Shown here: one piece after another, positions 2 through 57,432 of the stretch | Layout: each line of letters begins with the position of its first letter | Numbering within the stretch: the stretch's first letter is position 1 | Assembly (NCBI GenBank): GCA_964036045.1 | Contig: OZ038379.1 | Span: forward strand, 24,304,001-24,368,000 | Source of the DNA: Eutreptiella sp. 'Long Island Sound 2002' | Taxonomy: Eukaryota > Protista > Euglenida | Length of the DNA stretch: 64,000 bases | Direction: 5' to 3' | Program-made: the position numbers and the translations under genes | The notes under the pieces: model-generated | The model's input: the letters and a program-made list of their open reading frames with translations, nothing else | Database searches by the model: none | What the model was told of the DNA's origin: nothing

Positions 2-1951
2 TTGCCCAAAGCGAAGGTTCACGACCTGCTGGGAGTGGGTGCACGGGGGGAAAGGGGGCGAGGAAGAGGGGACGGACAACGTCCCCGACTGGCAGGCGAG
101 GAGCTGAAGCGTCTGGACAGGTTGGCGGAACAAGTGTCCCTTCTGCCAGGCGTAAAGTGTCTCAGGCGTGAGATGGTGCACAAAATGATCTTGGGAATGG
201 GCGACGCTATGTGCGGATTGGAGGGCAGGGACGAGGGGCTGCGAGTTCTGTCTAGTACTCTGAGCAGGGTAGTGGACGGGGGGGACTTAGACGAGGAGGA
301 TGACGGGTATTATAGCAGCAGTGACGAGGAGGGGGAAGTTACAGATGCCATGGCGGCCAGGGGAGTAGGGGAGGCGGGGAGGGTTGTGGTCTCGCGGTCG
401 ATCTGGAATAAGGTTGTCCCCCCCGACCTCCTGAAGGTCTACAAAAGAGCCCAAAAGGAGAAGGGGGAGGGGGGAGACAGTGAGTTGGGCGGACGCCCGG
501 GGCCAGTGGACAAGATGCTGGAGTCCCTGCGCGTCACTACAGGGGGACTGCACAGGACATCCGCCCCCCCTACAGCTTGCATGTTTCTAACGTGGAAAAA
601 TGCACTACACTGTAGGGCAATCCTGGACGCCAGGCGAGTTAACGAAGGTGACCCTCGCCGCCCCCCGAGGTTCCGGCTCCCTGCTCTGGAGGACATCAGA
701 AACTGGATGGGCCAGACGAAACGGGGTATGAAGCGGGGTCGTGTGTTCCTCGCCAAGCTCGACCTCCAAAATGTCTACTGGAGCATCCACCTCCCGACTG
801 CCTGGAGGAGAATCTTTGTGGTGCAGGGGGGATCGGGGAGAAAGTTTTGGTATTCGCGACTGCCTTTCGGGTGGAGTTATAGTCTAGCTATCTGTCAGAG
901 GCTGGTGCAGGCTATTATTCGCCGCGTGCTATCCCGTCATGGGGTGAGGGGGTGGGTGTACTTGGATGATATCCTGATCTCTTGTCAGCGTCGGGGCAGG
1001 CTGAGGAGGGCGGTGCGTAATTGCAAGACTCGCCTCCGCAAGGCTGGATTTATAGTGGGAGACAAGAGTGAGACTACGCTGACGGAATGTTTGGGGTTTG
1101 TTGGAAAAACCCTAGACACACGTGCCGGCACTGTAAGCAACTCGGTGGGGGCACTGGTGGGCGCCTTTCGGGCCTGGGTCAGGGGGGTGGGCAGGGGGAA
1201 ACTCCCCACTGTTGCACTACGACGGCTGCTGGGAAAGCTCTGTTGGCTTGGCAGGCCGAACGCGGGACTGGCGTCATTTCTGGCGGGCGCCTACCGCTGC
1301 CTGCAGCGAGGTCTTGGGCACTTCAGTCGGGGGGTGGCTAAAGGGATCGCCACAGTCTTGACATTCTCATGTGTACCGCCGAGGGCAGATGTGCTTGGGG
1401 ATCGTGGGGCTGGGACCTGGGAAGTGTTTGCCGATGCGGCCCCAGAGGGTGAGTGTTTCCGAGTCGGGATTGTGGGGGAAAAGGGGTTTTATCGCTCCTC
1501 AATCTGCCCTGAGTGGGTTGCCTCTCTGCAACAGGCAGAGCTGTTCGCTGTTTATGCTGTTGCTAAGCTGGCCTCGTACCGCGGTTTTCAATCGGTGCGC
1601 ATCGGCTCGGATAGCAACGTGGCGCGCGCACAAATCAACTCACTGCGTGCCTGTGTGTGTGCGGGCCCCCAGCAGCGTATCCTCTGGCGCCTATTTTGGC
1701 TCCGCTGCTGGAGTGGCTGTTCCATCAGTTCCTTTAGAGTGAGGTCGGCGATCAACCCAGCTGATCCTCTAAGCAGGGTAGTCAGCTTCCAATCACGTGC
1801 ACAGGCGGTGGCAGATGCCGAGGGCCGTCGCGTGATGTGGGATAAGCAAACCGATGGAAAGTACGAGGGACTGGCGGAGATGATCCGGCCCCCCTGGAGA
1901 TTCGTTCTGGTGAAGGGGGGTGTGGGGCAGGGCGCGAGGAGGTGGCAGTGA
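2..1951 (+). CDS. Reverse transcriptase-RNase H (pol) of a tyrosine-recombinase retrotransposon (DIRS/Ngaro/VIPER group); 5'-partial but uninterrupted
   Basis: 649-aa open frame with KLDLQNVY, RLPFGW and YLDD (959-970), then DIRS-type RNase H (FADA...QAEL...GSDS...NPADPLSR). No C-terminal Dam methylase. Confidence 0.92.
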   Translation: MPKAKVHDLLGVGARGERGRGRGDGQRPRLAGEELKRLDRLAEQVSLLPGVKCLRREMVHKMILGMGDAMCGLEGRDEGLRVLSSTLSRVVDGGDLDEEDDGYYSSSDEEGEVTDAMAARGVGEAGRVVVSRSIWNKVVPPDLLKVYKRAQKEKGEGGDSELGGRPGPVDKMLESLRVTTGGLHRTSAPPTACMFLTWKNALHCRAILDARRVNEGDPRRPPRFRLPALEDIRNWMGQTKRGMKRGRVFLAKLDLQNVYWSIHLPTAWRRIFVVQGGSGRKFWYSRLPFGWSYSLAICQRLVQAIIRRVLSRHGVRGWVYLDDILISCQRRGRLRRAVRNCKTRLRKAGFIVGDKSETTLTECLGFVGKTLDTRAGTVSNSVGALVGAFRAWVRGVGRGKLPTVALRRLLGKLCWLGRPNAGLASFLAGAYRCLQRGLGHFSRGVAKGIATVLTFSCVPPRADVLGDRGAGTWEVFADAAPEGECFRVGIVGEKGFYRSSICPEWVASLQQAELFAVYAVAKLASYRGFQSVRIGSDSNVARAQINSLRACVCAGPQQRILWRLFWLRCWSGCSISSFRVRSAINPADPLSRVVSFQSRAQAVADAEGRRVMWDKQTDGKYEGLAEMIRPPWRFVLVKGGVGQGARRWQ

Positions 1952-2299: not shown

Positions 2300-5200
2300 C
2301 ATGAAAAAACAATTTCTTCATCCGGTTGGTCAGTTCAAGTTGTAGGGGAAGCGGATTGCAAAGAACAGTTTAACAACGTGCACCCGTGAACATCGACACA
2401 ACACATGCGTGAGGCGGCCGCTTGGCTGCGAAAGCGATGCCGTTGGTGGGCAGCCATGTTAGGTTGGAGCATTCGGTCAGAAACACACTTCCCATTTTTG
2501 GAGCGTCGCTTCCCATGATTGGTCGCAATCAACCTAACCACATTTTAGGAGCACTGCTCCCAAAAGGGTATGGGTAAATGCTTGGATTTCCAAGGAGCTG
2601 TGATTCCAAAACTGCTTCCCCTATCCCATGGTGATCCCATGAGTTTTCGCAAAAAAGTCTCAATCCTACCAGTTGTACTTGCCCCCCCCCCCCCGCCCCC
2701 CCACACATGTCTCCGTAGTGCTCATGGTATAAGAAAATGGTGCGTTGTACTGTTGCGTTATACTTGCTTGCTATCGTACCATTGTGCCCCAACCTCTCCA
2801 CCCCGTCCCTTCCGATTTCATTTTTCCAAAGTGAGGAAAGTGAACTCTTTAGGTCCGACCGCCATGCCCCTTTTCGTGAAGTCAAATGTCATCTCCACTC
2901 GCGTAGGATCTTTTCACTGTTCTACCCGACTAAATTGTGACATACACACCATGATGACCCCTGCCCCCCAAACTCTTGAATGGGAGATGACAAAATCTTT
3001 TGTTCTTTTTTTATGTTCCTTTTTTTTGGCTGACCACCAACCCACCTCTTTGCGAAAAGCAGTCCGTAGAGCCCCGGTGGCGCGGCTGATCTCTTGGGAT
3101 GCTAGGAGGGAAGAGCGACATGCGGACTGGTGTGGTCAGCCAAGGACATGACCAACAACCGCCTTTTTGTGCAAAATGGAGTGAATTTCATTCTCTCTAT
3201 GGGGATTTGCTTTGTTATGTTTCGTGCTGTTGCTGGTGCTCGTTGTACAAGGTTGGAGACACAAGCCACGTGGGACCATGCAAATTGGAGTTGATGCCCT
3301 ATACATCTGCCGTCTTTCCTTTGCCTCTTTTCGTGCCGCATTTTGCGCTCCAAGGTACCACAATTTTGAATTGGCACATAGAAAGAACTACTTCTTTCTC
3401 CAGCACACCATGCTTGACACGGGGCATGATGGCAGCACCCCCCCTAGGAGGTGCAATCTGATTACAGGGGCCCCAGACCAGCGGTGCCGTCAGAGTGGCA
3501 GGGCACTGGTGCGGTTTTGTGCGGACCATGTTACACTCAAAGGAGGCCCCCCAACTGTTCGTCCGTGTCATCGTGCCGCCGCATGCAAGGCCCAGCAACT
3601 AATAGGTAAGTAAGCCATGCCCCAGGCACATAGCTGCTTCCTCTGTTGTCTATATGCAGCACTTTGGTTCGGCGCTTCTCTCAAGGAGGCAATGGCGGAA
3701 CACATTTTTAATCTGTTGAAAACATTGCCTTTTCATCTTCATCTTTGGCGCCCCCCTTCCCTAAAGTGCTGCAGTTCGGCGACGAGCAGTCCAACCTCCA
3801 AGTCCTCCAACTGGTCAGAGTGGGAGGTCCCCGAGTTGCAGCTGCTAGGAGATGCCCTTCCGTCCCCTTGGAACAAGGACACCGAGAAACCCCTCTCGCA
3901 ATTGGTTTGCCCGCAAACACCCATTCTGACACTCCCTCCCTCAGCTCCATCCCCATGCTATGTGCCCTCACCACGTCGAATTCCCCCACCTACCACCAAA
4001 GCTCGTACCAGCAGATGCTGAATCGCCCCCCTCTTGTCAAGGCCACCGACCCCATTGCCCCCCCGAGCAGAGTAGTCGTTGGGCCAAACCCTCGAGTGGG
4101 TACTTCAACATGGGGTGGCCATGGAATAACTTTGCTATGTGCCTGTGAGCTTCATCGCTATGTCACTACTGTTGCACTGCGATGCAAACTGGCGGGCATT
4201 CTTGTTGACACTAAACAATACCGTAGCCTTGTCTGCCGCCGCTTTTGCAGTGGCGTTTTGTTCACTGGGCGTGAAGCCTGCAGATTTTCAGCTCTGGCAG
4301 CCCGGGGTTGTAAACTCCCCTGCCCTTTCATCTCCTATTTTTATCTTATTGCAAGGTTGTCACGCTCTCGCACAGCTTTGACACTGGCTTCCCCCAAGGG
4401 GTATGGGAGGCATGGGGCAAAATACATGTGTTTTTGATCCATCTCATTTTGGAATGTGTAGAAAGTGGGTCAACGGCCACATTTTACCTACATGGCCTGT
4501 CCCATGCTTTCGCTCAGCTGCCCCTCCAATTTAGCGATGAGGCAGGCAAATGTGATTTGCGAAGTGGAAAGACGTTTGTCACCCCAACCACTACCTGGGG
4601 GCGTGTTGCACGCTGTGCGTGCGCTATGCACAACGTTTGTCCAAGAATGTGCCCAACCTACATAGCAGTGTTTAGTACCAATGACGAATAGCCTTGTTGT
4701 GCATTTATATGAGTTCTTTGCATGCCTAGCCCTCATTTTTGTTGCATTTGTGCGTGTTGTTGTGCATGTCACTCTAAAAGGGTACCTGATTCGGTGCTAT
4801 GGTGAAACATTCGGGTACCCTATTCGGCAGCCTCCATTACTCTGCTGTCTCTCAGACCTTCATGTCCACATCAATGGAAAGGGACGGCCGCGTGCGGTCC
4901 CCTTCACTGCCCCCCTCCTGGGCAGCCCGCCGTTAGTCTCCTCGCATCACTAGAGGCTAAGCGGCGCGATCCCCCGCCATTGCAGTGACCGAATACACCG
5001 TGTACATTGGTGTCACAGCCATAGTCGGCACGGCCCCCCTCCGCCTCGACCGCCGGTACCCCCTCTTCAGCGGCGCGATATGTATTTATGCCAATTGCGT
5101 GCACACAAGGAAACTTCAGAGTGCTGCCAATGCCCTCTGTTTTTGTGCCATAAATGCATGGCTGATCACTCGTGTGACTTGCCAAATGATGAGCCCTTAT

Positions 5201-6711
5201 AATACTGTACAGTTTCTTACGTTCAGACATTGAGAAAAACCGCGTATTTCAAATAATTTCACTTTAGATGTGTTCATTGTGCATGTGCTTCTCATTCTGT
5301 TGTAAGGTGCCGTTGAGGATGCAATGTGCGGCCTTGGCTGGCTTGGGGAGGGGGGTATGGGTGAAACATCAGGTTGTACAACATTGTGGTGCTCTTGAAT
5401 GGTGTATAAAGACAAAAATATTAGCAGTAGTAACAAAAACCCCATTTTCTCCATGCAATAGCCGCGCTGTGCAGTAACGCCCCCCCCCCCCTTGTCTTGA
5501 GGCCAGGTTTAGGGCGACCCTGAGCCATGAGCAAGATATGAAATTTAAAGACCGTAAGCTCGGACGGTCGGAGGCGCATCTATAGAAGCCTATTCACAGG
5601 GGCGTGGTCTTGGAATAGTATGTGCTCAGTGCCTTCCTTGAGTGGCGTGCCATTGCTGAGTGCATCATCCGTGCACTACTGGACCTACCGTCGGTGAGAG
5701 TTCTCTGTCACGGTCTAACCCAGCACCCTGCAAGAACATAATGTCTATTGCATCTGCGGACGGTGCGGTAGGGAAAGCATTGGGCTACGGGAGTGGGTTG
5801 CAATCCGAATGGAAACCCTGCAAGGGTGGCCCCCCATTCTCGTACCTGCCAGTTGGTGCGTTCTTGCTGCATAGGGAACGCAAGGTAGAGACCAAGGCTC
5901 ACAGAAATGAGCAGAGAAAAGGGAGGGCTGTGGTTGTGGAGCCCCATCTCTCCCCTCTCGTAGTTGTCCGTGACCTAAGCCGCGCGGACTCGTCTGTCGA
6001 GTATGTGCCACCGGGGCATGCGTAGAGGCAGAGAGCTCCACCAGACGCATTCATTCCATTTGCACAGCAAAGCAACATCGGCGCATCGTGGTTGATGTTG
6101 AGGATGCATCAGGCGCTAACCCAGATGACCCATCTCACCGCGGGGGGATCGTTAATGGATGGCAATGACAGTGGGAGCTAGAGTGGCAATGGTCACTCCA
6201 CTGACAGCGATGCAACCAACACTGGTGTCACTGTCAGCAATTCAGAAGCCGAGGCTGCCCCACCTCCCCCACCAGCCAAGAAACGTTCCGCCGGATAGGT
6301 TCGTGTTCAAGCCAGAGTGCAATTTTGCCACTAATGCCATTGATGTGCATGCGGAATCTGTTTCATCCCGGTGACCCATTTGCTAACTGAGGGAATTTTT
6401 TTGTGACAGACACCGAGGAAGCACTTTAAAAAAAAGAAAAGAAATAATAAGGAACGGCGAGGGAGGGCTAACCTTTTCCGGGGGGTGGGGGGCTAGGGCG
6501 GGGGAGTGCTATGTGAGTCGTTCCTACGATTAGGGACTTGTGATTGGCCATGCCTAGCCATGGCAGCTGGGGCAGCTTCTTGTTGAGGAGTGGCAGAGTA
6601 GGGTAGAGTAGCTTCCGGTGTCTCGGGCCGGGGGGTGGGTGGGGTTTTTTTGTTCAAAATCAATTTGTGTGTGTGGGGGTGGGGTCAATTGTTCTGTCAT
6701 GCTTAACGAGT

Positions 6712-6830: not shown

Positions 6831-8211
6831 TTGGAAAATCTACACTTGGGGGTGCAAAGTTACCTCGGAAATGGTAACCTACTCACGGGCCCAAAATGCC
6901 ACTTTGGCGAAACAGTCTCTCAGGAGTGTGCACAGAAAACCAATTTGAAAAATGTTTGACACAAGCCATTCCATGGTACCGATAGCAATTTATTCTTCTG
7001 CTGGCAGTAGAACAAAGGCGGATCAAGGCACTATGTCCAACCGTTTCAAAGGTGTGTTTCCGGCGCTGTTTCAAGGGGGGGGGGTTGGCGCAGGGTTATG
7101 CACATGCACATGGGTTTATTTCCTGCCGAATAGCGGTCACACACATGTCCTGTGCCTATTACGGTAGTGAATATTGCCCTCTAGGCAGGTAAAAAAGGGG
7201 GTACTCATTGGCACCGTCTATTTCTTTCCATCTATAAGGCTCATACTACCGACTACACCTCGTTATGCATTGCTGGGGGCGCATCACATCGCTACCGGCG
7301 TTGCAATTAGTAGCTCAACAGGCTTCCTCCCATTTTTGCTGTCTTTTTTTGCTGCCAGCAGCAGAGCTGCTATAGTGCAATACATGGTACGTAATACATG
7401 TCGTATGTCCAGAAAACTATGGACTATGCCCCCAGTGTACCCCGCATTTCTCGGCTATATGCCCCTTTAGTGGGGGACCATGTCGTGGTGCGATATGCAC
7501 CTGCAGGTGGTGTTGACGGTGTTGGGCATGGAAACTACGCCCACCATTCGACGATCCACCATGCATACCGTTGCCCTAGATGACCGGGTACCAGTTTTCG
7601 GGTTTCCATTTTTTATCAATTTTTTCCGCTCAAAAAAACGCTATTTCCTGCCTCATATGTGTCAAGTACAAGACTTCACGGGTCATGGGCCACTCTCTAA
7701 TTAATGTACTTCACCCCTCACGCACATTTCTTTACAATTCCCCCTGCTGTAGGCGTGCAAGAGAACTCCCACAATGATTCTATTGTTGGCAGTAGAATAG
7801 GTCACGGTGTCCATCAAGGGTCACAACGTGGTGCTGCGCTCTACTGTTGCCTCATGGATACCTATGGATCTGGCCTTGTCTGTTCATGTCATCACCATAC
7901 CGTGATTGTTTCACGACATAGGCCTTGTCGATGTATGGTTCGCGTCCCATTGTACACATACTTGTCCTATTGTCTTCTGATCAGCATACACTGAAGAATG
8001 TAGCCACAGGTGCTTGTATGCTGTCCTCTGCATTAGTATCCTGTTTCGGAAACGTTGGAACATAGATCAATGTCCACCCTATTGGGGTACCGTTCTGTAG
8101 TGTCCGTTGAAACTGAGGTTTAATGCATTTCCTAAAAATGCCTTTGTCTTAGCATGTATGCAGCAATGCACATGTTTCACTTTTGCACTTAGTCAATTTT
8201 CATAATCGGGG

Positions 8212-44750: not shown

Positions 44751-47200
44751 TGAGGGCACGCACTTCCCACTACACTCTGCCCTTTCTATTTCTGCTGGGT
44801 TGCTCCCAGTTGCCCTCATTTGTTCACCGCGCATGCACCGCATCCCGTGCCTCTCCAATCATGACGACTGACCAATGCCAGTGAACAGTAGTGGGGAGGG
44901 AGCCAGCCTCATCACTTGACAACTCCTGACGCATTGCCCCACATCTCACGTTACTGAACCAGCGGGGTTGACGGTATTTCATGTTCAGTTTCACGTGTCA
45001 CCCTTGAGCGCGTGTGAATGAATGTGTGTGCGCAGAAGTGATACATTACGGATTGCGGCACCATTTGTATGCATCACGTGTGGTAAGGAGTAGGAGTCGG
45101 CTACACCACATCGTCTACTGTATCCCTCTATATTCTTTTCTAACCTCTACCCCGATATTCAAGTCATTTTCGGTGTGGTCAGAGTCGTGCGATGCATAAA
45201 CGTCCCCAGGGCTTGTTCGGTGCAAACCGACAAGAAGCTATCAAATCTCAATGTGGGTTTGCCCCCCCTTGTCAGTGCATTCAGCCCGGGGTTCGCTGCT
45301 TCTCGTTTGCCCTGATCCCACCTGCTCTCTCCTCAAATGTTGTGGCGGTGAAAACCGTTTCCAAACACAAACCAAACAGCGCCTTCGCATCCCTAGAACC
45401 TTCTGTGTCCCATTGGTTGGCTAATTGTTACTCTATGAAATGCAACACCATGGTTGCTGTTGCATAAAATCAGGGTGGGGTAGCAGTGCTCTGCGAGATT
45501 CCTGGTGGCAGTGCATGCAGTGCACCCTGTCGTGCCGTAACGGCACATTGACCAAGGTGCTGCTGCTCTGAGGATTGCTGTCAGTTTGAATTGACTTCCT
45601 GCAGTGTGACAAAACCCGTGGCTGTATACACCTTTGTGGTGATGGTTGAATTTTCGGCTAGAATCATCACCCTTGGGCAAGATGGGGTGGGAGTCGGCCG
45701 AGCCTGGGGTAAGGTGACCAAGGAAACTGACCCCCCCCCCCCCCCAGTCAGCGCACGAGGTTGGCACTGCCATGGAACCGGTTTCTGGAACTTTGTGCGT
45801 CACCCTACCCCTGCACCACACGCGCTCTTTATACCTACCAATTTTACCTACCAATATACCTACCAAAGATCTCCATTGCTGCCCAAACAACTCTTTTAGG
45901 TGTTGTTGCTGCCAATTTCGAAGCATTCCATCATTGACTGGAATCGAGACAGCGGTGTTGGTTGCGTTGTGGGCTGATACATTACCCAGGATGAGAATTG
46001 GCACATAGAGCTGGAGAGGGTAGAAGGGTGGTTGCTCTTCATCTTTTCACAGAACACCACAAAATTGGGACAAGGGACAATTGGAGTGGTGATGGCAGTG
46101 TTACCAAACCCCTCGCGGACATCGACCTTTTCCAGCTCAGTATTGATTTCTCTTTGAGGTATGGCTTTCTCTGTGCATGGCACAGCGCTGTTTTACTCAC
46201 CCTTCAGTCTTTCTTGTGCCCCAGTAGCACATTGGGATGCCTATGGGCGATCAGATTCAGCTTATCCTCACTACCTGTTCTGTCCGCTACCACATTGCTT
46301 TGTGGTACAATCGTAGCATGGGACAACTCTCCGAGAGATTTCTGAAGTGCCTTGTGGTGAGCGGACTTCACCAGCTTGCCATGGCCTGGACCCCCCCCCC
46401 CCAAAAGAATGCATTACCTAGGAGGAGAATTTTGGTTGCGTTGGATGTGTGTTTGTCTGTTTACAATCTGTGCCAGCCCGCAGAGGCAGCGCTCGCTGCT
46501 GCGAACATTGGAAAAGATGTGTACCATACCGGCGCGCGTGTTTTCCCTGCATGCACCTGGAGCGATTGGAGGCATGGGGAGGGATTGACCGAGGAGAATT
46601 GTGGCATGCATCATGTGACATTGGGGGAACGTTAGCGCGCCGGGCACACGCCGGGCATCTTTTGTGACCCATGCCCCACCCGTGGCCTTCTAGGGGGTGC
46701 ACTAAGGGGGCGCACTTAGCGCAGCTAGCTGTGTTACTTACGTCTAATGGCCCGTATCATGTTCCGGTAGACATATATAATTCTACTTAAGTCTAGCGGA
46801 ATAAGTGTTACGCGTAGCGGAATATTATCACCAGACCGAATTTAACATTACAATGTTCCGCTAGACGCATCGCAACGTACATCTTACATATGTGTCTTCA
46901 TGCGATAATTGAACAAACCTAGGAGCTTGCAAGAACTCTGGCAAAGTATTTTTTTCACTACTTCTTCTGGTTGTGGGGCCGAAGTGTTGAAGTGCCAAAA
47001 GGCCGACTGTCGGCATTGCTTTCCTGTTGTCCGTCATTCACACCCCATATCATAGTGAGTGCGCTAGCGTGTGCAGCTATTTGGGCGTCTGGCTGTACTA
47101 GAGACCCATACTTTGAGATACTAGGTGACCCCTAGAGTAGGTTTTGACTTCTGATTTTGTCCCCTTTGTTGGGGGCCCCTGAGAATGCACGGGTGACGTA

Positions 47201-47858
47201 CCCCCCCCCCCCTTGTCGTTCCCCACCCCTTGTTGTTACCTAGGGGGGGGGGTGGGGGACTGTCACTTGGTCAACCCAAAATTTTTCGTTGCGGCTCATT
47301 GTGTTGTTGTGTGGGTGACTGTGTTGTGGGGCACTGCCACTTGTATCCCTTGCACTCATGGCAGGACATTTTGCTTACTTTCGCTGAAATGGAACTTGAT
47401 AGCACAACCATGTTTCCCCCTGGGACAATTGTGACGGATGATGATAGTGACCTGAATTCTGACACGGAGGTTGTGTGGGTGAAGAGTGCCCGTGGTATAT
47501 GGGGTATGGGACACAGTTTTGGGAACAAGTTGTATTTCACAAGGGACATTCCCGAAGGGAAATGGGTTCCCAAAAATCTGCTTGCGCTTGCCAAGCCTCC
47601 TACCAAGAAGGCAAAACCACTACCCAAGGGTGCTGTCCAAAGCATTCCAGTGGAAAGTGGAGAGCATGTGCAAGATTTCAAGGTGAAGTGGAGCAGGACC
47701 AAGAAATTTTCCGCCGAGCCCGTCAAGGAGTAGGTCTCCGTACATTGGCAGCCCTTTGAACGTATCTTATGCTGAATTCTTTACGGTGGTAGTGCGGTCC
47801 CCCAGGGGGTGGTGGGGGACCGTCTTCCCTGGGGTGGGGAATGACAAGGGGGGGGGGG
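47201..47858 (+). mobile_element. TA-flanked TIR element nested in element 1
   Basis: TA|C12-TTGTCGTTCCCCACCCC...GGGGTGGGGAATGACAA-G11|TA; ~29-bp TIR with one mismatch. Confidence 0.88.
47410..47733 (+). CDS. Small ORF of ARG(I/V)WG...RDIPE...GEHVQxF family, carried by the TA element
   Basis: Homologous to 61789-62150 and partly to 58310-58567. GEHVQ at 47659, 58460 and 62053. Confidence 0.55.
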   Translation: MFPPGTIVTDDDSDLNSDTEVVWVKSARGIWGMGHSFGNKLYFTRDIPEGKWVPKNLLALAKPPTKKAKPLPKGAVQSIPVESGEHVQDFKVKWSRTKKFSAEPVKE

Positions 47859-47925
47859 TAGCATTTCCGCCCTCTTTTGGGCCCCAACCTTCCGGTGCTA
47901 TTGAGGAAACCTGGGACAATCTCTG

Positions 47926-48070
47926 AATCCACGCTTTGTTGCGTGGCCCCTTGAGTTGGGGTTAGGGGGTTGCAATCCACGCTTTGTTGCGTGGCCCCTC
48001 GAGTCGGGGTTAGGGACTCGCAATCCACGCTTTTTTGCGTGGCCCCTCGAGTTGGGGTTAGGGACTCACA
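47926..48070 (+). repeat. 48-bp tandem repeat x3 containing GGGGTTAGGG
   Basis: Units start at 47926, 47974 and 48022 (AATCCACGCTTTGTTGCGTGGCCCC...). Confidence 0.95.
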
Positions 48071-48697
48071 ATTGCTTTATTATGCAACGTGCTTTGTAGG
48101 GAAGGTGTGCAGTGTAACGTGGTCTACTTGGGGGGCTTCTCCATGAGAGGGTGAATCCCGGGCTGAAGTCGGGATACTTAATAGAAAAGTAGCGCGCCGG
48201 GGGCGCGCCGGGCAGAATTCCCCCATTGGTGCCACACTGAACGGTAACGCAAGTCCTTCCTCAGTGGCAGGGGAATGGTGTCAACAAGGGATTGCGGGAT
48301 GCGCAATTTGTCATCAGATCCTCTAGGGACGTAGAATGAAGCCACTGCTGGGCTAGGTCAGCCCAGGGGCCGCAAATGCGTACCCAATCGTGCATAAACA
48401 CCTAGCGCTAGGCAGCACAGTGGATAAGGGGAGCGTGCGGCGTGCTGGAGTGTTTGCCAAAACAGACCGCGCACTGGATCTTTGTCTTCTCCCATGGAGG
48501 AGAGCATCTGTGCCACGGGACATTGCCCCACAGCCATTGGAGCCATGCTTGGTGGCGTTGTGCACATAGGGGGAGCCTCAAGCGCAGTGCGCGCGCAGTG
48601 CAACTATTTGGGCGTCTCGCCGTACTAGAGACCCATACTTAGAGATACTAGGGGCCCCTAGGGGCATCATGGTGACCCCTAGCGGAGGTTTTGCAAG

Positions 48698-49433
48698 GGG
48701 GGTGTTGCCTGAACCGTGCGCGCACGGTGCGCGCACCGTGCGTCCTTTTGCGTATTCTGTGTCCACCAGATCCACAATGCCTGAATCTAAGCTGCCCTGG
48801 CTTGTCGCCGGACTGCTTGTGTACTACCACCGCTCCAACGGGGATAGGGTGTCGGCCACTGTCGTTGACCCTTCTCCAAGAGGTGGGCGTCGTGTCTCTA
48901 TTCGGTACGAATTGGGTGGTGAAGAGCGGTTGGAGCGGTTGGAGTTTGCAATTGTGACTGCTGAGAGCCCCGATTCCCCCCAACCTGTGCACCATGAGGC
49001 GCCGATGGACGCTTTGCTGGAGCCCCAATTACCTGAAGTGGAAGCTGAAGCCCCTAGAATTGATGATCATGAGCTAGAAGCCCCCCGCCTGTGTTGTCGC
49101 GTGTGCATGGTTTGTTACGGAGGTGCGTGCAAAGTGCAGAAATTGGGAGCCTGGAACCTGTGACAAGCATCAGATTCAAAAAGAAAGTTCCCGGTACGCC
49201 AATAGGGGCTGCAGGGTGCATAAAATAGGACCCTGGAACCTGTGCCAAGCATGAGACTAAAAATTGAAGAATCTTGGTATGCCAGTATGGACTGCAAGGT
49301 GCAAAAATCAGGACCCTGGGTGTGTTTCTATGGGGGCCATTCAACGGGGTACAAGTTGGGCAACCATCCCAAAAACATTGAACCGTGCGCGCACCGTGCA
49401 CGCACCGTGCGCGCACCGTGCGACAACGCCCCC
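48698..49433 (+). mobile_element. Non-autonomous TIR element 4, nested in element 3
   Basis: AAG|GGGGGTGTTG...CAACGCCCCC|AAG. ACCGTGCGCGC repeats at both ends. Confidence 0.82.
48777..49163 (+). CDS. Tudor/SH3-barrel-like domain + acidic linker + Cys cluster
   Basis: GLLVYYHRSNGDRVSATVVDPSPRGG..VSIRYE...CCRVCMVC. Confidence 0.5.
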   Translation: MPESKLPWLVAGLLVYYHRSNGDRVSATVVDPSPRGGRRVSIRYELGGEERLERLEFAIVTAESPDSPQPVHHEAPMDALLEPQLPEVEAEAPRIDDHELEAPRLCCRVCMVCYGGACKVQKLGAWNL

Positions 49434-49593
49434 AAGGTGTAGCACGTTTGGGTCAAGGCATGGCAAGGCGTAGCATGGTTGTGTCAAGGCATGGTAAGGC
49501 GCAATGCTCGTGTGCACACATTGATCTATCGTGCTTGCACATATGCTACAAGACTTCATACCCCCCTCCTCCTTTCTTAGAAACACTTTCTTC

Positions 49594-49761
49594 ATGGATT
49601 TGAGTCTTGGCGATCGGGTGTTCTACACCCGCTCCAACGGCGTGCGAGTTCCTGCCACGGTGGTAGGGATGGCGGGAGATGGGCTCATCCACTTGGAGTA
49701 CTACCAAGATGCACTACGGGTGGTAAATCGCCAATGCAAGATGGAGTCCATGTGTACTTAG
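49594..49761 (+). CDS. Tudor/SH3-barrel-like domain fragment
   Basis: GDRVFYTRSNGVRVPATVVGMAGDGLIHLEYY; a paralog of 48777. Confidence 0.5.
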   Translation: MDLSLGDRVFYTRSNGVRVPATVVGMAGDGLIHLEYYQDALRVVNRQCKMESMCT

Positions 49762-49984
49762 TAGACAATGGAACAGAAAGACAGTTGTGTGTTCTTGAGG
49801 GTGGCGACCAATGCGCTGTTCATGGCTTTTCCAATTGTGCATGGGGGAATGTTTGCCCGGCGCGCGCCCGGCGCGCTACTTTTAGACTATGTTCCCCCCG
49901 AAGAGCCCCCAAGCACACCCCTTGGAAACGCCCTTAGAATTAGGTGACCCAAACTGCCCCAGTTCAAGAAAGTTGCAAACCGGG

Positions 49985-50130
49985 GTACACAGTACCACTC
50001 TCGCTCCTTTAAGGGCGATCTTGGTCAACACCTTAGCAAGTTGGGAGAATGGGGGGTTAGGATAGCACAACCGCATCGATCTCCAGTAGAAGCGATAGGC
50101 GTTATTGAGGTATCGCGAACAGTAGAGGTG
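49985..50130 (-). pseudogene. N6-adenine DNA methyltransferase fragment (DIRS-associated Dam-like motif IV)
   Basis: NAYRFYW...CYPNPPFSQLAKVLTKI...ARVVLCTP; NPPF at 50047-50058. Confidence 0.75.
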
Positions 50131-50149
50131 CATCATAACATTGGTCCCA

Positions 50150-50243
50150 CAAATGTGGGTGTCAATACATTCAGTACAATAGTGCTCCTTACACTCATCA
50201 CAAACTGCGACGGTGGAGCACTTCTGGCAACACAACACACACA
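50150..50243 (-). pseudogene. B-box-like zinc finger fragment
   Basis: C-x2-C-x5-C-x2-C-x4-C-x2-C-x3-H (CQKC..CDEC..CTECIDTH). Confidence 0.55.
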
Positions 50244-50266
50244 CTTCTGCCTCATCCTCTGCCTCA

Positions 50267-50575
50267 TCTTGCGTGCCACAACCGAGCAAACAGCTGCTCA
50301 ATGCGTGCCCTATACCACCCGTGCAAGTCATTGTAACATTGTTGGTGGGCTATCAAAGTGCCATTCTTTCTTCCAATGAATGGCACAATGACATGAATCC
50401 GCCCCTTATAAGCACCATCATGGCCCCCAACTTCGAAATCAAAGAAATCACCTCGGGTATGACAAGGTCCATACCCATCCCAAATCAAAACATCTGCTGA
50501 TGTCCCGGGGGCCAAGGGGCAAATCCATATAATGTTGCCCAACATATCAACGGCAACAGTCCACCGGTAGGGCAC
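50267..50575 (-). pseudogene. PIF/Harbinger/ISL2EU-type (DDE_Tnp_4, HARBI1-like) transposase fragment
   Basis: VAVDMLGNI..PGTSAD..DGAY (50408-50419)..IVPF..YNDLHGWYRARIEQLF. Confidence 0.85.
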
Positions 50576-51239
50576 GGGTCACAAAAGATGCCCGGCGCGC
50601 GCCCGGCGCGCTAACGATCCCCCCATGATGTGTGTTATGTGAAGGGAAGGTAGTTTGCAACTTTCTTGAGCTAGGGCAGTTTGGGTCACCTAATTCTAAG
50701 GGCGTTTCGAAGGGGTTTGCTTGGGGGCTCTTCGGGGGGAACATAGTCTAAAAGTAGCACGCAGTGCAGCGCGCAGTGCGCGCGCAGTGCAAAGATTCCC
50801 CCATAGTGGGATCCACGTGGCTCAGTGCACCGCGCCTGATCAAGAACAGCGCCCTGTGACCCAGTACGCCATGCACTATGTTGCCCGCGCCCACCGCATG
50901 TGGAACGCTGCCCGACAGGACCTGGCAGCTGGTATCTGGGCTCACTGTCACTTCACCACGGGAGCACATCGGATGACCCAATGGTTCAAGAAAGTTCTCA
51001 CCGCATGGCACACCACCAAGCTAGGCATGTGTTTGTGGTTCCAACACTCCGTCCCCATATGGCCTTGGTCCTAAGTGAACAGTTTGCAGCCTCCTTGCTG
51101 TGTCTCCACTCCTACGCACACTCATACCTCCCCACACTGTCCCTGCATATGCAGCTCTATGTGGTCTCGTGCATGGGAGGTCCTTGAGCCAAGGGCCTAG
51201 TCAAAGGCCTTTGGTTGGTTTGCTGCCTTCAAGGAGCGG

Positions 51240-51564
51240 GTGGACAAATATGATCCCACCATGTCACCAAAGCCCCATTGGTGGCAGTGTTCGTTTTTTG
51301 TGACGAATAGCAATTGTTCGTCTGGGGTCCATTTGTTTGTCTTGGTTGTAGTTATTGAGCCCTCCATGCATGTGTATTTGTGGGATGCCAAGGGAAGTGA
51401 GTTGTCCATATGGCCTCTTATTCAAGAACTTCGCGACAAAGGCATCCCATTAACCGCCAAGCTTTTGGATTACCAACGATTTGATGGTTGGACTTGCGGT
51501 TACTTGCCTAAGTTTGTTGCAGCAATTGTTGCAGACGGACCCTCGCCCCCCACCCCCATGTCTA
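51240..51564 (+). pseudogene. Clan CE (Ulp1/adenain-like) cysteine protease domain
   Basis: N..SSGVH(L) with H at 51330 (TTG is one base from TGG, Trp), VYLWD (D 51384), YQ (Q 51474) and WTCG (C 51495), all in one frame. Confidence 0.65.
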
Positions 51565-52098
51565 CCCCCCCCCCCCCCCCTTCCACCCCCCCTTGGGGGG
51601 CGTCACTGCCTAGTTCCAAAAAAAAAGTGTTGCTGCCATATTGCACAGGATTGTGCCACCGAGACACCTCGTTGTCTGAGATTATGGTCACCTCCTTTGT
51701 TCTGACCCCTTGCACTCCTCAGACCTCTGAAAATGTTCCCTCAAGGCACTGTTGTGCGCTATGTCCGTTCCACAACGGACCCTGTGTTGGCTGTTGTCCA
51801 AGGCCCTTCTCCGCATGGTGAACAGTATAGAACCATCACGTACAAACGTGGTGCTGCTGAAGTTGTGCATCACCGCACTGATGAGTGGATGCTGTGCATT
51901 GAGAATTCCGCTTATTTGTATTGTGTGCATGGCATGACTGGCCATGAATTCTGCAGAGTATGCGCCGCTAAATGGTTTGTCGGGAGTGGTGCCCACCCCC
52001 CCGGGGGGAGGGGGGGGTGTCATTTGGTGACCGTCCCCCCTGGGGTGGGGGGGGACCGTCGTCCCTTGGGGGGGGGCTGGATATTGGGGGGGCGAGGG
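51565..52098 (+). mobile_element. Probable degenerate TA-flanked poly-C-tipped element carrying a Tudor-like ORF (51733-)
   Basis: TA|C-run-TTCCACCCC at the left; degenerate complement ending GGGTA at 52100. ORF MFPQGTVVRYVRS...YRTITY...CVH..HEFCRVC. Confidence 0.4.
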
Positions 52099-56481: not shown

Positions 56482-57432
56482 ATGTCATGCAATCGAGTCG
56501 ACCTGCGCCATTTGATAGCTCAACTCCACAGCTGGGCGGACCATAAGACGATGTTCCACAGGGCACCCCAAGCCCCCACGACGGCCAAGCTGCCGTCAGC
56601 GCGACCAGACCTGCCGAAGTTAAAGGAGGAAAAGTGGGGTAGCCACAAACGATCTTTGTTGGCGGAGCTGGAGAGAATGTCGGGTGAGGGGTGGGTGGTA
56701 GTGTACACGGATGGCTCGGCGGAACGCGTCCGGGGTTGGATGCAAGCGGGGTACGGGGTCTGGTTCGGGGACAACATTAGTCGTAATTTTCGGGCGCACG
56801 TGCCAGCTCATGAGCGACAGAGTATCAGCACGGGGGAGTTGCGAGGGGTGCTACATGCGATGCTCAGTCGGGAGGCGGGGGAGCGGATGGTGGTGTGGGT
56901 GGATTCCGAATATTTTTTTAAGGCTGTCACAGTGTGGACAGACAAGTGGAAGAGGCACGGGTGGCGCACGTTGTCAGGGGAGGTAGGGCACAGAGACTTG
57001 TGGGACCACATTGATTGGCTTCGCGGGGAGGCGGGTGTCCGGTGGGTGCCATCGCACCTCGGAGTGGCCGGTAATGAGGCAGCCGATGAACTAGCGGGGC
57101 AGGGCCGGGAACTACACCCCTATAACCTGCTGCCCCTGTCTAAACGACGCCGAGTCATGGAGTGGGATGCGTTGGGGTTGGAACCCATGGCAGAAGTGTC
57201 CGACTTGGACCTGGGGTCAGAGGTGTACTCTGGGGGGACGTCAGGCGGCAGTTCGGCCGCGTCGTCAACGTCGGGCGACGAAGACGTTTTTCTGTCCAGT
57301 TCCGAAGACATGTCATTTAGTACCGATGTCAGTGACACGCGGTTGCGGGGGGCGTGGGACAGTGACAGTGATGGGTTCAGTACAGACGTGAGTGAGAGCA
57401 GGAAGAGGCGGCGGGGGGGGATCGAGTCCTGA
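56482..57432 (+). CDS. RNase HI-like domain with acidic/Ser tail and basic C-terminus
   Basis: VYTDGS, GELRG, DSEY, WKRHGW, HRDLW and WVPSHLG..GNEAADELA; catalytic DEDD residues intact in an open 316-aa frame. Confidence 0.9.
   Translation: MSCNRVDLRHLIAQLHSWADHKTMFHRAPQAPTTAKLPSARPDLPKLKEEKWGSHKRSLLAELERMSGEGWVVVYTDGSAERVRGWMQAGYGVWFGDNISRNFRAHVPAHERQSISTGELRGVLHAMLSREAGERMVVWVDSEYFFKAVTVWTDKWKRHGWRTLSGEVGHRDLWDHIDWLRGEAGVRWVPSHLGVAGNEAADELAGQGRELHPYNLLPLSKRRRVMEWDALGLEPMAEVSDLDLGSEVYSGGTSGGSSAASSTSGDEDVFLSSSEDMSFSTDVSDTRLRGAWDSDSDGFSTDVSESRKRRRGGIES

Follow-up and report, generated by a model that had tools for sequence, protein, structure and literature searches.

Clustered and nested non-autonomous elements in a Eutreptiella contig, probably of PIF/Harbinger type, with GGGGG/CCCCC tips and matched 11-bp terminal units

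CACTA/EnSpm is, besides PIF/Harbinger, the other main superfamily of transposable elements with 3-bp target site duplications (TSDs), and ISL2EU elements make 2-bp TSDs. A preference for TWA targets is typical of PIF/Harbinger elements, though not defining for them. PIF/Harbinger transposition produces 3-bp TSDs and uses a two-protein system in which ORF1 is needed together with the transposase (PMC2836001). The stretch analyzed here (the window) comprises 64,000 nucleotides of Eutreptiella sp. 'Long Island Sound 2002' (assembly GCA_964036045.1, contig OZ038379.1, positions 24,304,001 to 24,368,000, forward strand); window positions are counted from its first letter, and positions at loci outside the window carry a locus handle (L-number). 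Four elements with terminal inverted repeats (TIRs), designated E1 to E4, lie at 46623-50802. They are very probably non-autonomous copies of one diversified PIF/Harbinger-type (DDE_Tnp_4) cut-and-paste family, which appears to be a previously unnamed branch with unusual ends and target preference.

46623-48224, + strand: E1, 1602 bp, starts GGGGG and ends CCCCC, TSD ATT at 46620-46622 and 48225-48227.
48569-50802, + strand: E2, 2234 bp, starts GGGGG and ends CCCCC, TSD ATA at 48566-48568 and 50803-50805.
48698-49433, + strand: E3, 736 bp, starts GGGGG and ends CCCCC, TSD AAG, inside E2.
49843-50623, - strand: E4, 781 bp, starts GGGGG and ends CCCCC, TSD CAT, inverted, inside E2.

All four elements were read directly in the window at these coordinates, with the tips and perfect 3-bp TSDs that a sequence-only reading of this DNA had described. 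The nested-element observation was confirmed: E2 hosts E3 and E4, and E1 is separated from E2 by 344 bp. Clustering was also seen outside the window at L010:7351-13987, which holds three family members within 6.6 kb and, adjoining the third, a 40-bp end fragment of a fourth. The cluster at 46623-50802 is a tidy but ordinary case of nested insertion.

Logan contigs of four public runs were aligned on window 46000-51400. At E3, contigs passed from 48693 to 49433 and skipped 739 bp (736+3; 6 contigs in run X2, 1 in X6); at E4, they passed from 49839 to 50624 and skipped 784 bp (781+3; 14, 2, 2 and 2 contigs in the four runs). Both joints are exact paralogous empty sites, that is, E2-type copies without E3 or E4 and with one copy of the triplet. 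One E2-type copy (L003:7890-8649, 760 bp) ran uninterrupted over the E4 site and was 94-97% identical to E2 on either side of E4. Homology of E1 and E2 to copies elsewhere, in an independent assembly, broke off precisely at the tips, and the proposed coincidence of element boundaries with the G5/C5 tips was borne out. Within the 64-kb window, GC-rich tandem arrays of period 11 were confined to the ends of E1-E4, with both ends of each element matching. The elements are regarded as real because of these matched arrays, the exact empty sites and the homology that ends at the tips. Contig depth in X2 was ~46-56 over single-copy flanks and reached 1e4-1e6 over the elements (1e3-1e4 times the flanks); E1-E4 are therefore all high-copy.

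The DDE fragment of E4 was used as query among 1.8 billion representatives and gave 363 relatives at the threshold of E<=1e-3; relatives of the transposase found in searches were only unnamed proteins of ENA assemblies. JGI metagenome contigs were scanned for two exact patterns, a 22-mer taken at the inner end of E4/E2 and a 23-mer taken at the 5' end, with no match, and all extra copies were therefore obtained by protein-to-contig look-ups (11 of 12 successful), which led to ten loci in ENA assembly ERZ25074135 and one in ERZ27267618. Sequence of the source genome occurs in estuarine metagenomes; a search for the dinoflagellate spliced leader and a scan with Rfam returned no match, and an atlas search with a neighboring UBA gene yielded no taxon. 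Boundaries of the extra copies were set from end homology alone, and eight copies, at loci of ERZ25074135, were well bounded.

L002:5833-6985: copy with TSD ATA.
L003:7890-8649: copy with TSD CTT.
L004:9383-11089: copy with TSD TGA.
L007:3105-3884: copy with TSD AAA.
L007:4057-7308: copy with TSD TAT and degenerate tips.
L009:7573-9476: copy with TSD TAT.
L010:7351-9387: copy with TSD TCT.
L010:10333-12013: copy with TSD TGA.

Together with the four window elements, perfect 3-bp TSDs were present in 12/12 well-bounded copies, which, with empty sites that skip element length plus 3 bp, upholds the TSD length originally proposed. TSD bases were A or T in 30/36 cases (83%, against a background of 45%; P 2e-6), the base at -1 was C in 10/12 copies (P 9e-5) and the base at +1 was G in all 12 (P 2e-7). 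From the A/T-rich triplet, the C at -1 and the G at +1, the target is therefore given as C|WWW|G. A relaxed target choice had been suggested for this family; the departure from TWA stands, and the choice is not simply relaxed, since an A/T-rich triplet between C and G is selected. Two copies at L010 (L010a and L010b) were 99.15% identical over 1177 bp and had different TSDs, which points to recent activity; several intact transposase open reading frames (ORFs) are in line with this. At L006, one 16-nt string was found on both sides of a 5'-truncated transposase-bearing copy (5060-5080 and 7148-7165), which suggests a rearrangement or segmental duplication rather than normal insertion.

At each element end, an inverted repeat of 12 bp opens with GGGGG (8-11 of its 12 bases match between ends, as in short TIRs), and one to four tandem 11-bp units follow directly. 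The unit is GCGCGC plus five nucleotides, namely CGGGC (E1 and E4), AGTGC (E2), ACCGT (E3) or AGAGC (L008), and within any one element both ends carry one identical unit. In the orientation of the transposase, the 5' end reads 12-bp TIR, units, ATCTTTT and the 3' end reads AAAAGTA, units, 12-bp TIR. Three of the units are self-complementary at 10/11 bases (e.g., GCGCC-G-GGCGC), so that it is the central base and the junctions that show how a unit is oriented. Units at the two ends matched directly at 22/22 and 32/33 positions, against 21/33 and 25/29 when inverted, and are thus in the same orientation. Over 115 nt, the inner 3' ends of E4 and E2 were 94% identical despite different units, and E4's own ends matched each other. 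A probable further copy was located 41 kb from the cluster.

4597-5484, + strand: probable fifth family member, of another subfamily, with units GCACGCTGTGC and GTGCGCTATGC (TGTGC/TATGC).

A Cys-finger remnant in this copy (5068-5181) is most similar to the P0155/P0156 lineages; the right tip passes into a run of 12 C, and the TSD is unreadable. The chimeric E4 (CGGGC units on an AGTGC-type inner end, with ends still matched) suggests that matched units are required for mobility. It is possible, rather than probable, that the 11-bp unit serves as a private recognition code, in which each transposase lineage reads its own unit, both ends have to match, and the variants CGGGC, AGTGC, ACCGT, AGAGC and TGTGC split the population. 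The Harbinger population of one genome would then be divided into lineages without cross-mobilization, and the same-strand central base at both ends would make the two ends non-equivalent in the synaptic complex. 'Solo' ends, expected from recombination between direct arrays, were absent from 204 kb.

A search for autonomous transposases, as the sequence-only reading had envisaged, recovered intact copies of 1.7-2.0 kb with DDE_Tnp_4 ORFs. Intact ORFs and the transposase fragment of the window were as follows.

P0408: intact ORF, 422 aa.
P0411: intact ORF, 396 aa.
P0154: intact ORF, 375 aa (489 aa open frame in L007).
P0199: intact ORF, 656 aa.
50264-50575, - strand: transposase fragment in E4, with the second D and the E of the DDE triad (DDE_Tnp_4 20.8 bits, E 3.3e-4).

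The four intact ORFs passed the Pfam cutoff for DDE_Tnp_4 (PF13359; 24.8 bits) at 30-42 bits, and intact relatives overall scored 27.7-42.4 bits. The E4 fragment fell below the cutoff, yet was 91% identical to P0411; both the reported retention of a DDE_Tnp_4 fragment and the Harbinger-like assignment find support in this identity. In the alignment, the N-terminal helical region was conserved, the motifs TD(S/A)MPI, HDGAY and R(V/I)E fitted the DDE triad, and the C-terminal finger had the form CxxC...CxxC...CxxCxxxHxC. A PDB sequence search gave weak ZZ/B-box-like matches for this Cys finger and no match for the transposase. Intact elements of the CGGGC subfamily measure 1.7-2.0 kb and have a single ORF; a transposase of 396-422 aa is encoded in intact family copies of 1.9-2.0 kb. 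At least eight transposase lineages, 50-65% identical to one another, coexist.

E1 is a non-autonomous deletion derivative of the CGGGC subfamily in which the 5' region, the repeats and the 3' untranslated region were kept and the whole transposase ORF is gone; it aligned to intact copies (L006, L009) on either side of the ORF position.

46623-46656, + strand: E1 5' end, 12-bp TIR (46623-46634) followed by two 11-bp units (46635-46656).
48192-48224, + strand: E1 3' end, two 11-bp units (48192-48213) followed by an 11-bp terminal repeat ending CCCCC.
46725-47070: secondary insertion in E1, an unrelated repeat of 346 bp, missing from the L006 and L002 copies; contigs skip from 46723 to 47071.
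47201-47858: unrelated element in E1 with poly-C/poly-G tips and an inverted repeat, at TA (47199-47200 and 47859-47860).

The first insertion is A/T-richer and moderately repeated and has the ends CTAGC...GCTAG. For the second, contig joints skipped 661/678 bp and an empty site was present in L006; it encodes a 167-aa ORF (47230-47733) with no Pfam match, and poly-C/poly-G tips like its own were also seen at 51547-51595 and beside 5480. Three copies of a 48-bp tandem repeat occupy 47921-48072 in E1, with a summed contig depth of ~5e6 in X2 against ~50 for unique DNA, and the unit ranks with the most abundant sequences of this genome. Intact elements carry the 48-bp repeat directly upstream of the transposase ORF (L006:5880-5965). 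An E2-type element nested in E1 was considered as a candidate and dropped, since CGGGC-subfamily elements normally have the GGGGG stretch (46693-46723 in E1) in their 5' region.

E2 is a non-autonomous member of the AGTGC subfamily and measures 711 bp after removal of E3 and E4. Besides both ends, it has a Tudor/SH3-like mini-ORF and the final codons of the transposase gene belonging to its own subfamily.

49531-49761, + strand: Tudor/SH3-like mini-ORF in E2 (SH3_12, E 0.012, a weak match).
49769-49842, + strand: what is left of the C-terminal tail of the transposase gene of E2 itself, split by E4 and resuming at 50627, matching the ORF at L003:8039-8452(-).

The mini-ORF matched L010:13467-13674, in another AGTGC-type copy, at 76% of DNA positions. 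Small Tudor/SH3-like ORFs recur across subfamilies (window 48669-49163 and 49531-49761; L004:10001-10200), and one lies just outside an element (L003:10984-11394); they may be encoded by the elements, captured, or mobile in their own right. E3 is a short non-autonomous derivative of the third subfamily (ACCGT).

E4 is a non-autonomous CGGGC-subfamily copy with two internal deletions, 95.4% identical over 769 nt to L007:3105-3884 (TSD AAA). Its sense bases 64-350 and 349-487 matched bases 1089-1375 and 1550-1688 of the intact element at 94% identity, and the ends matched too. Sense bases 488-740 (~253 bp) are foreign to the intact element and include a 52-aa piece with an NPPF motif.

49882-50331, - strand: E4 ORF in which the C-terminal Cys finger of the family is fused to a foreign NPPF fragment of retrotransposon pol.

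The cluster of E4-type ORFs has 266 members. The NPPF segment also occurs in proteins with retroviral-type aspartic protease domains and adjoins an RVT_1 gene, and the foreign piece of E4 is therefore taken as a retrotransposon fragment. In a retrotransposon pol region at L011:7001-9298 (P0301, P0380, P0348), an NPPF segment that is Dam-like methyltransferase-like lies between aspartic protease and reverse transcriptase; this is the source of the E4 fragment. At L004:9383-11089, a 484-bp foreign segment carries a Tudor/SH3-like ORF that continues in frame into the DDE half.

The 64-kb window holds 1218 pairs of G5 and C5 at a distance of 300-3000 bp, and 21 of them had equal 3-bp flanks against ~19 expected. 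The earlier argument that four exact TSD matches are unlikely by chance thus fails when taken alone, because the window is rich in G and C runs and such matches occur at chance level. The same count is what could be cited for reading tips and TSDs as chance matches in G-run-rich sequence with no mobile element behind them. To that reading we give practically no probability: exact empty sites already refute it, the arrays are matched at both ends, depth is far above that of the flanks, and homologous copies elsewhere have other flanks and their own TSDs. It is very unlikely, too, that the real duplication is 5 bp (CNNNG) with tips GGGG/CCCC, which would place the elements outside the 3-bp-TSD families. 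Most insertions can be read equally as a 5-bp repeat, given C before the left TSD in 10/12 copies and G after the right TSD in 12/12, and contig joints share 4-5 bases; however, E4 (G at -1) and the young intact copy L010:7351-9387 (T at -1) still have perfect 3-bp repeats, and symmetry of the 12-bp inverted repeats requires five G and five C.

With boundaries and TSDs of 3 bp so placed, the superfamily and the content of the elements remain to be weighed. Membership in CACTA/EnSpm was rejected, the tips being GGGGG and not CACTA and the transposase of DDE_Tnp_4 and not EnSpm type. A single ORF, the lack of a Myb-like partner, a non-TWA target and relatives that are unnamed metagenome proteins only would all suit a neighboring DDE_Tnp_4-related superfamily such as ISL2EU rather than PIF/Harbinger proper; we consider this quite unlikely, as 3-bp TSDs were found in 12/12 copies here and ISL2EU duplications are of 2 bp. 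As to content, the elements had been described as Pack-type, that is, as carriers of gene fragments. Elements whose main content is captured host gene fragments are an unlikely description of this family: the family's own gene accounts for the DDE and Cys-finger pieces (91-94% identical to intact copies), E1 is without coding cargo, and the NPPF piece comes from retrotransposon pol (aspartic protease upstream, RVT_1 downstream) and not from a host gene, while the ~253 bp of E4 beyond the intact element, with their 52-aa NPPF fragment, and the 484 bp of L004, with an ORF in frame with the DDE half, speak for it. Filler DNA of E4's size is usual in deletion derivatives formed by abortive gap repair. 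No captured host gene was demonstrated in the copies examined, the one traced foreign piece being retrotransposon pol. The Pack-type label thus appears to be mostly a misreading of internal-deletion derivatives (E1, E2 and E4), and what stands of it is that filler DNA does occur.

Several results weigh against the assignment of E1-E4 to a PIF/Harbinger-type cut-and-paste family. TAA or TTA, which the TWA preference typical of the superfamily would predict, occurred in 0/12 TSDs. A Myb/SANT-like second ORF, the partner anticipated by the sequence-only reading, was not detected by Pfam on the upstream ORFs of the 3.25-kb L007 element or on the N-terminus of P0199. An N-terminal module of P0199 and P0163 is missing from the CGGGC subfamily, and a divergent functional equivalent of the Myb/SANT partner may exist. 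For P0154 (7 sequences) and P0411 (87 sequences), AlphaFold gave models with predicted local distance difference test (pLDDT) scores of 36 and 45, too low for use. Empty sites for E1 and E2 were sought in contigs of the four runs and none were recovered; empty sites, which the earlier reading had named as a check, were found, as paralogous copies, for E3 and E4. Three older copies had unclear TSDs or tips (L003:7521-10982, L005:9774-10862 and L010:12537-13947). Finally, that the 11-bp units are transposase binding sites is something we infer only.

On the PIF/Harbinger-type reading, the intact master would be a compact element of 1.7-2.0 kb with a single ORF composed of N-terminal helical region, DDE core and C-terminal Cys finger. 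The cognate transposase is proposed to bind the 11-bp units through a part of the protein likewise assigned by conjecture, to cut at the G/C tips and to insert into C|WWW|G sites by cuts staggered by 3 bp, which would leave the 3-bp TSD. In E1, an internal deletion removed the complete ORF, and two unrelated insertions arrived later. E2, a 711-bp deletion derivative, inserted first and was hit afterwards by E3 and E4; the latter belongs to a multi-copy derivative of ~780 bp that has two internal deletions and, as filler DNA, ~253 bp. All four would be mobilized in trans.

The locus is a clean, internally dated record of transposition, with E2 first and then E3 and E4 into E2. It sets rules for a very abundant, recently active family (tips, 3-bp TSD, C|WWW|G target and single-ORF master), and with these, thousands of copies can be annotated throughout a large eukaryotic genome rich in repeats. 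Several lineages with matched, subfamily-specific 11-bp units offer a natural experiment on the evolution of specificity between transposase and ends. A PIF/Harbinger-type transposase may be able to work without a recognizable Myb-like partner. The elements also carry a warning: what looks like 'cargo' in elements of this kind consists mostly of leftovers of their own gene.

Other mobile sequences were seen in the window and beside family members. ORFs for a reverse transcriptase (RVT_1, 61 bits) and for an RNase H (82 bits) lie at window 2-1951 and 56482-57432, and the window is therefore considered to be largely transposable elements. At L003:830-3713, adjoining Phage_integrase (tyrosine recombinase) and RVT_1 genes indicate a DIRS-like retroelement beside Harbinger copies.

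In common with described PIF/Harbinger systems (maize PIF, rice Ping/Pong with mPing, zebrafish Harbinger3_DR), the family has a DDE_Tnp_4-type transposase, short TIRs, 3-bp TSDs and abundant short non-autonomous derivatives mobilized in trans. It differs in its tips (GGGGG/CCCCC), in its triplet, which is A/T-rich but TAA/TTA in 0/12 copies, in its single ORF with no detectable Myb/SANT-like ORF1, in a transposase that ends in a B-box/ZZ-like Cys finger, and in subfamily-specific, tandem, near-palindromic 11-bp units that adjoin the TIR in the same orientation at both ends. The extended, palindromic target of maize PIF, CWCTTAGWG, likewise has C and G around the triplet, which also speaks against the ISL2EU reading; a literature search for this string found nothing. 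ISL2EU elements are similar in that they are related, among eukaryotes, to IS5-type DDE transposases and frequently have one ORF, and are set apart by 2-bp TSDs against 3 bp here. As in Pack-MULEs and other Pack-type elements, some copies hold DNA foreign to the autonomous element between family ends; unlike in those, the foreign pieces are short, the traceable ones come from another transposable element, and most 'gene fragments' are the family's own transposase. The closest parallels to E1, E2 and E4, which keep their ends and lose coding sequence, are miniature inverted-repeat transposable elements of the Tourist type and other internal-deletion derivatives (mPing from Ping, Ds from Ac), and E4-type copies of ~780 bp have similarly been amplified to hundreds or more. 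In contrast to these parallels, several derivatives here keep translatable chimeric ORFs, in which the Cys finger is joined to a retroelement fragment or a Tudor-like module to the DDE half.

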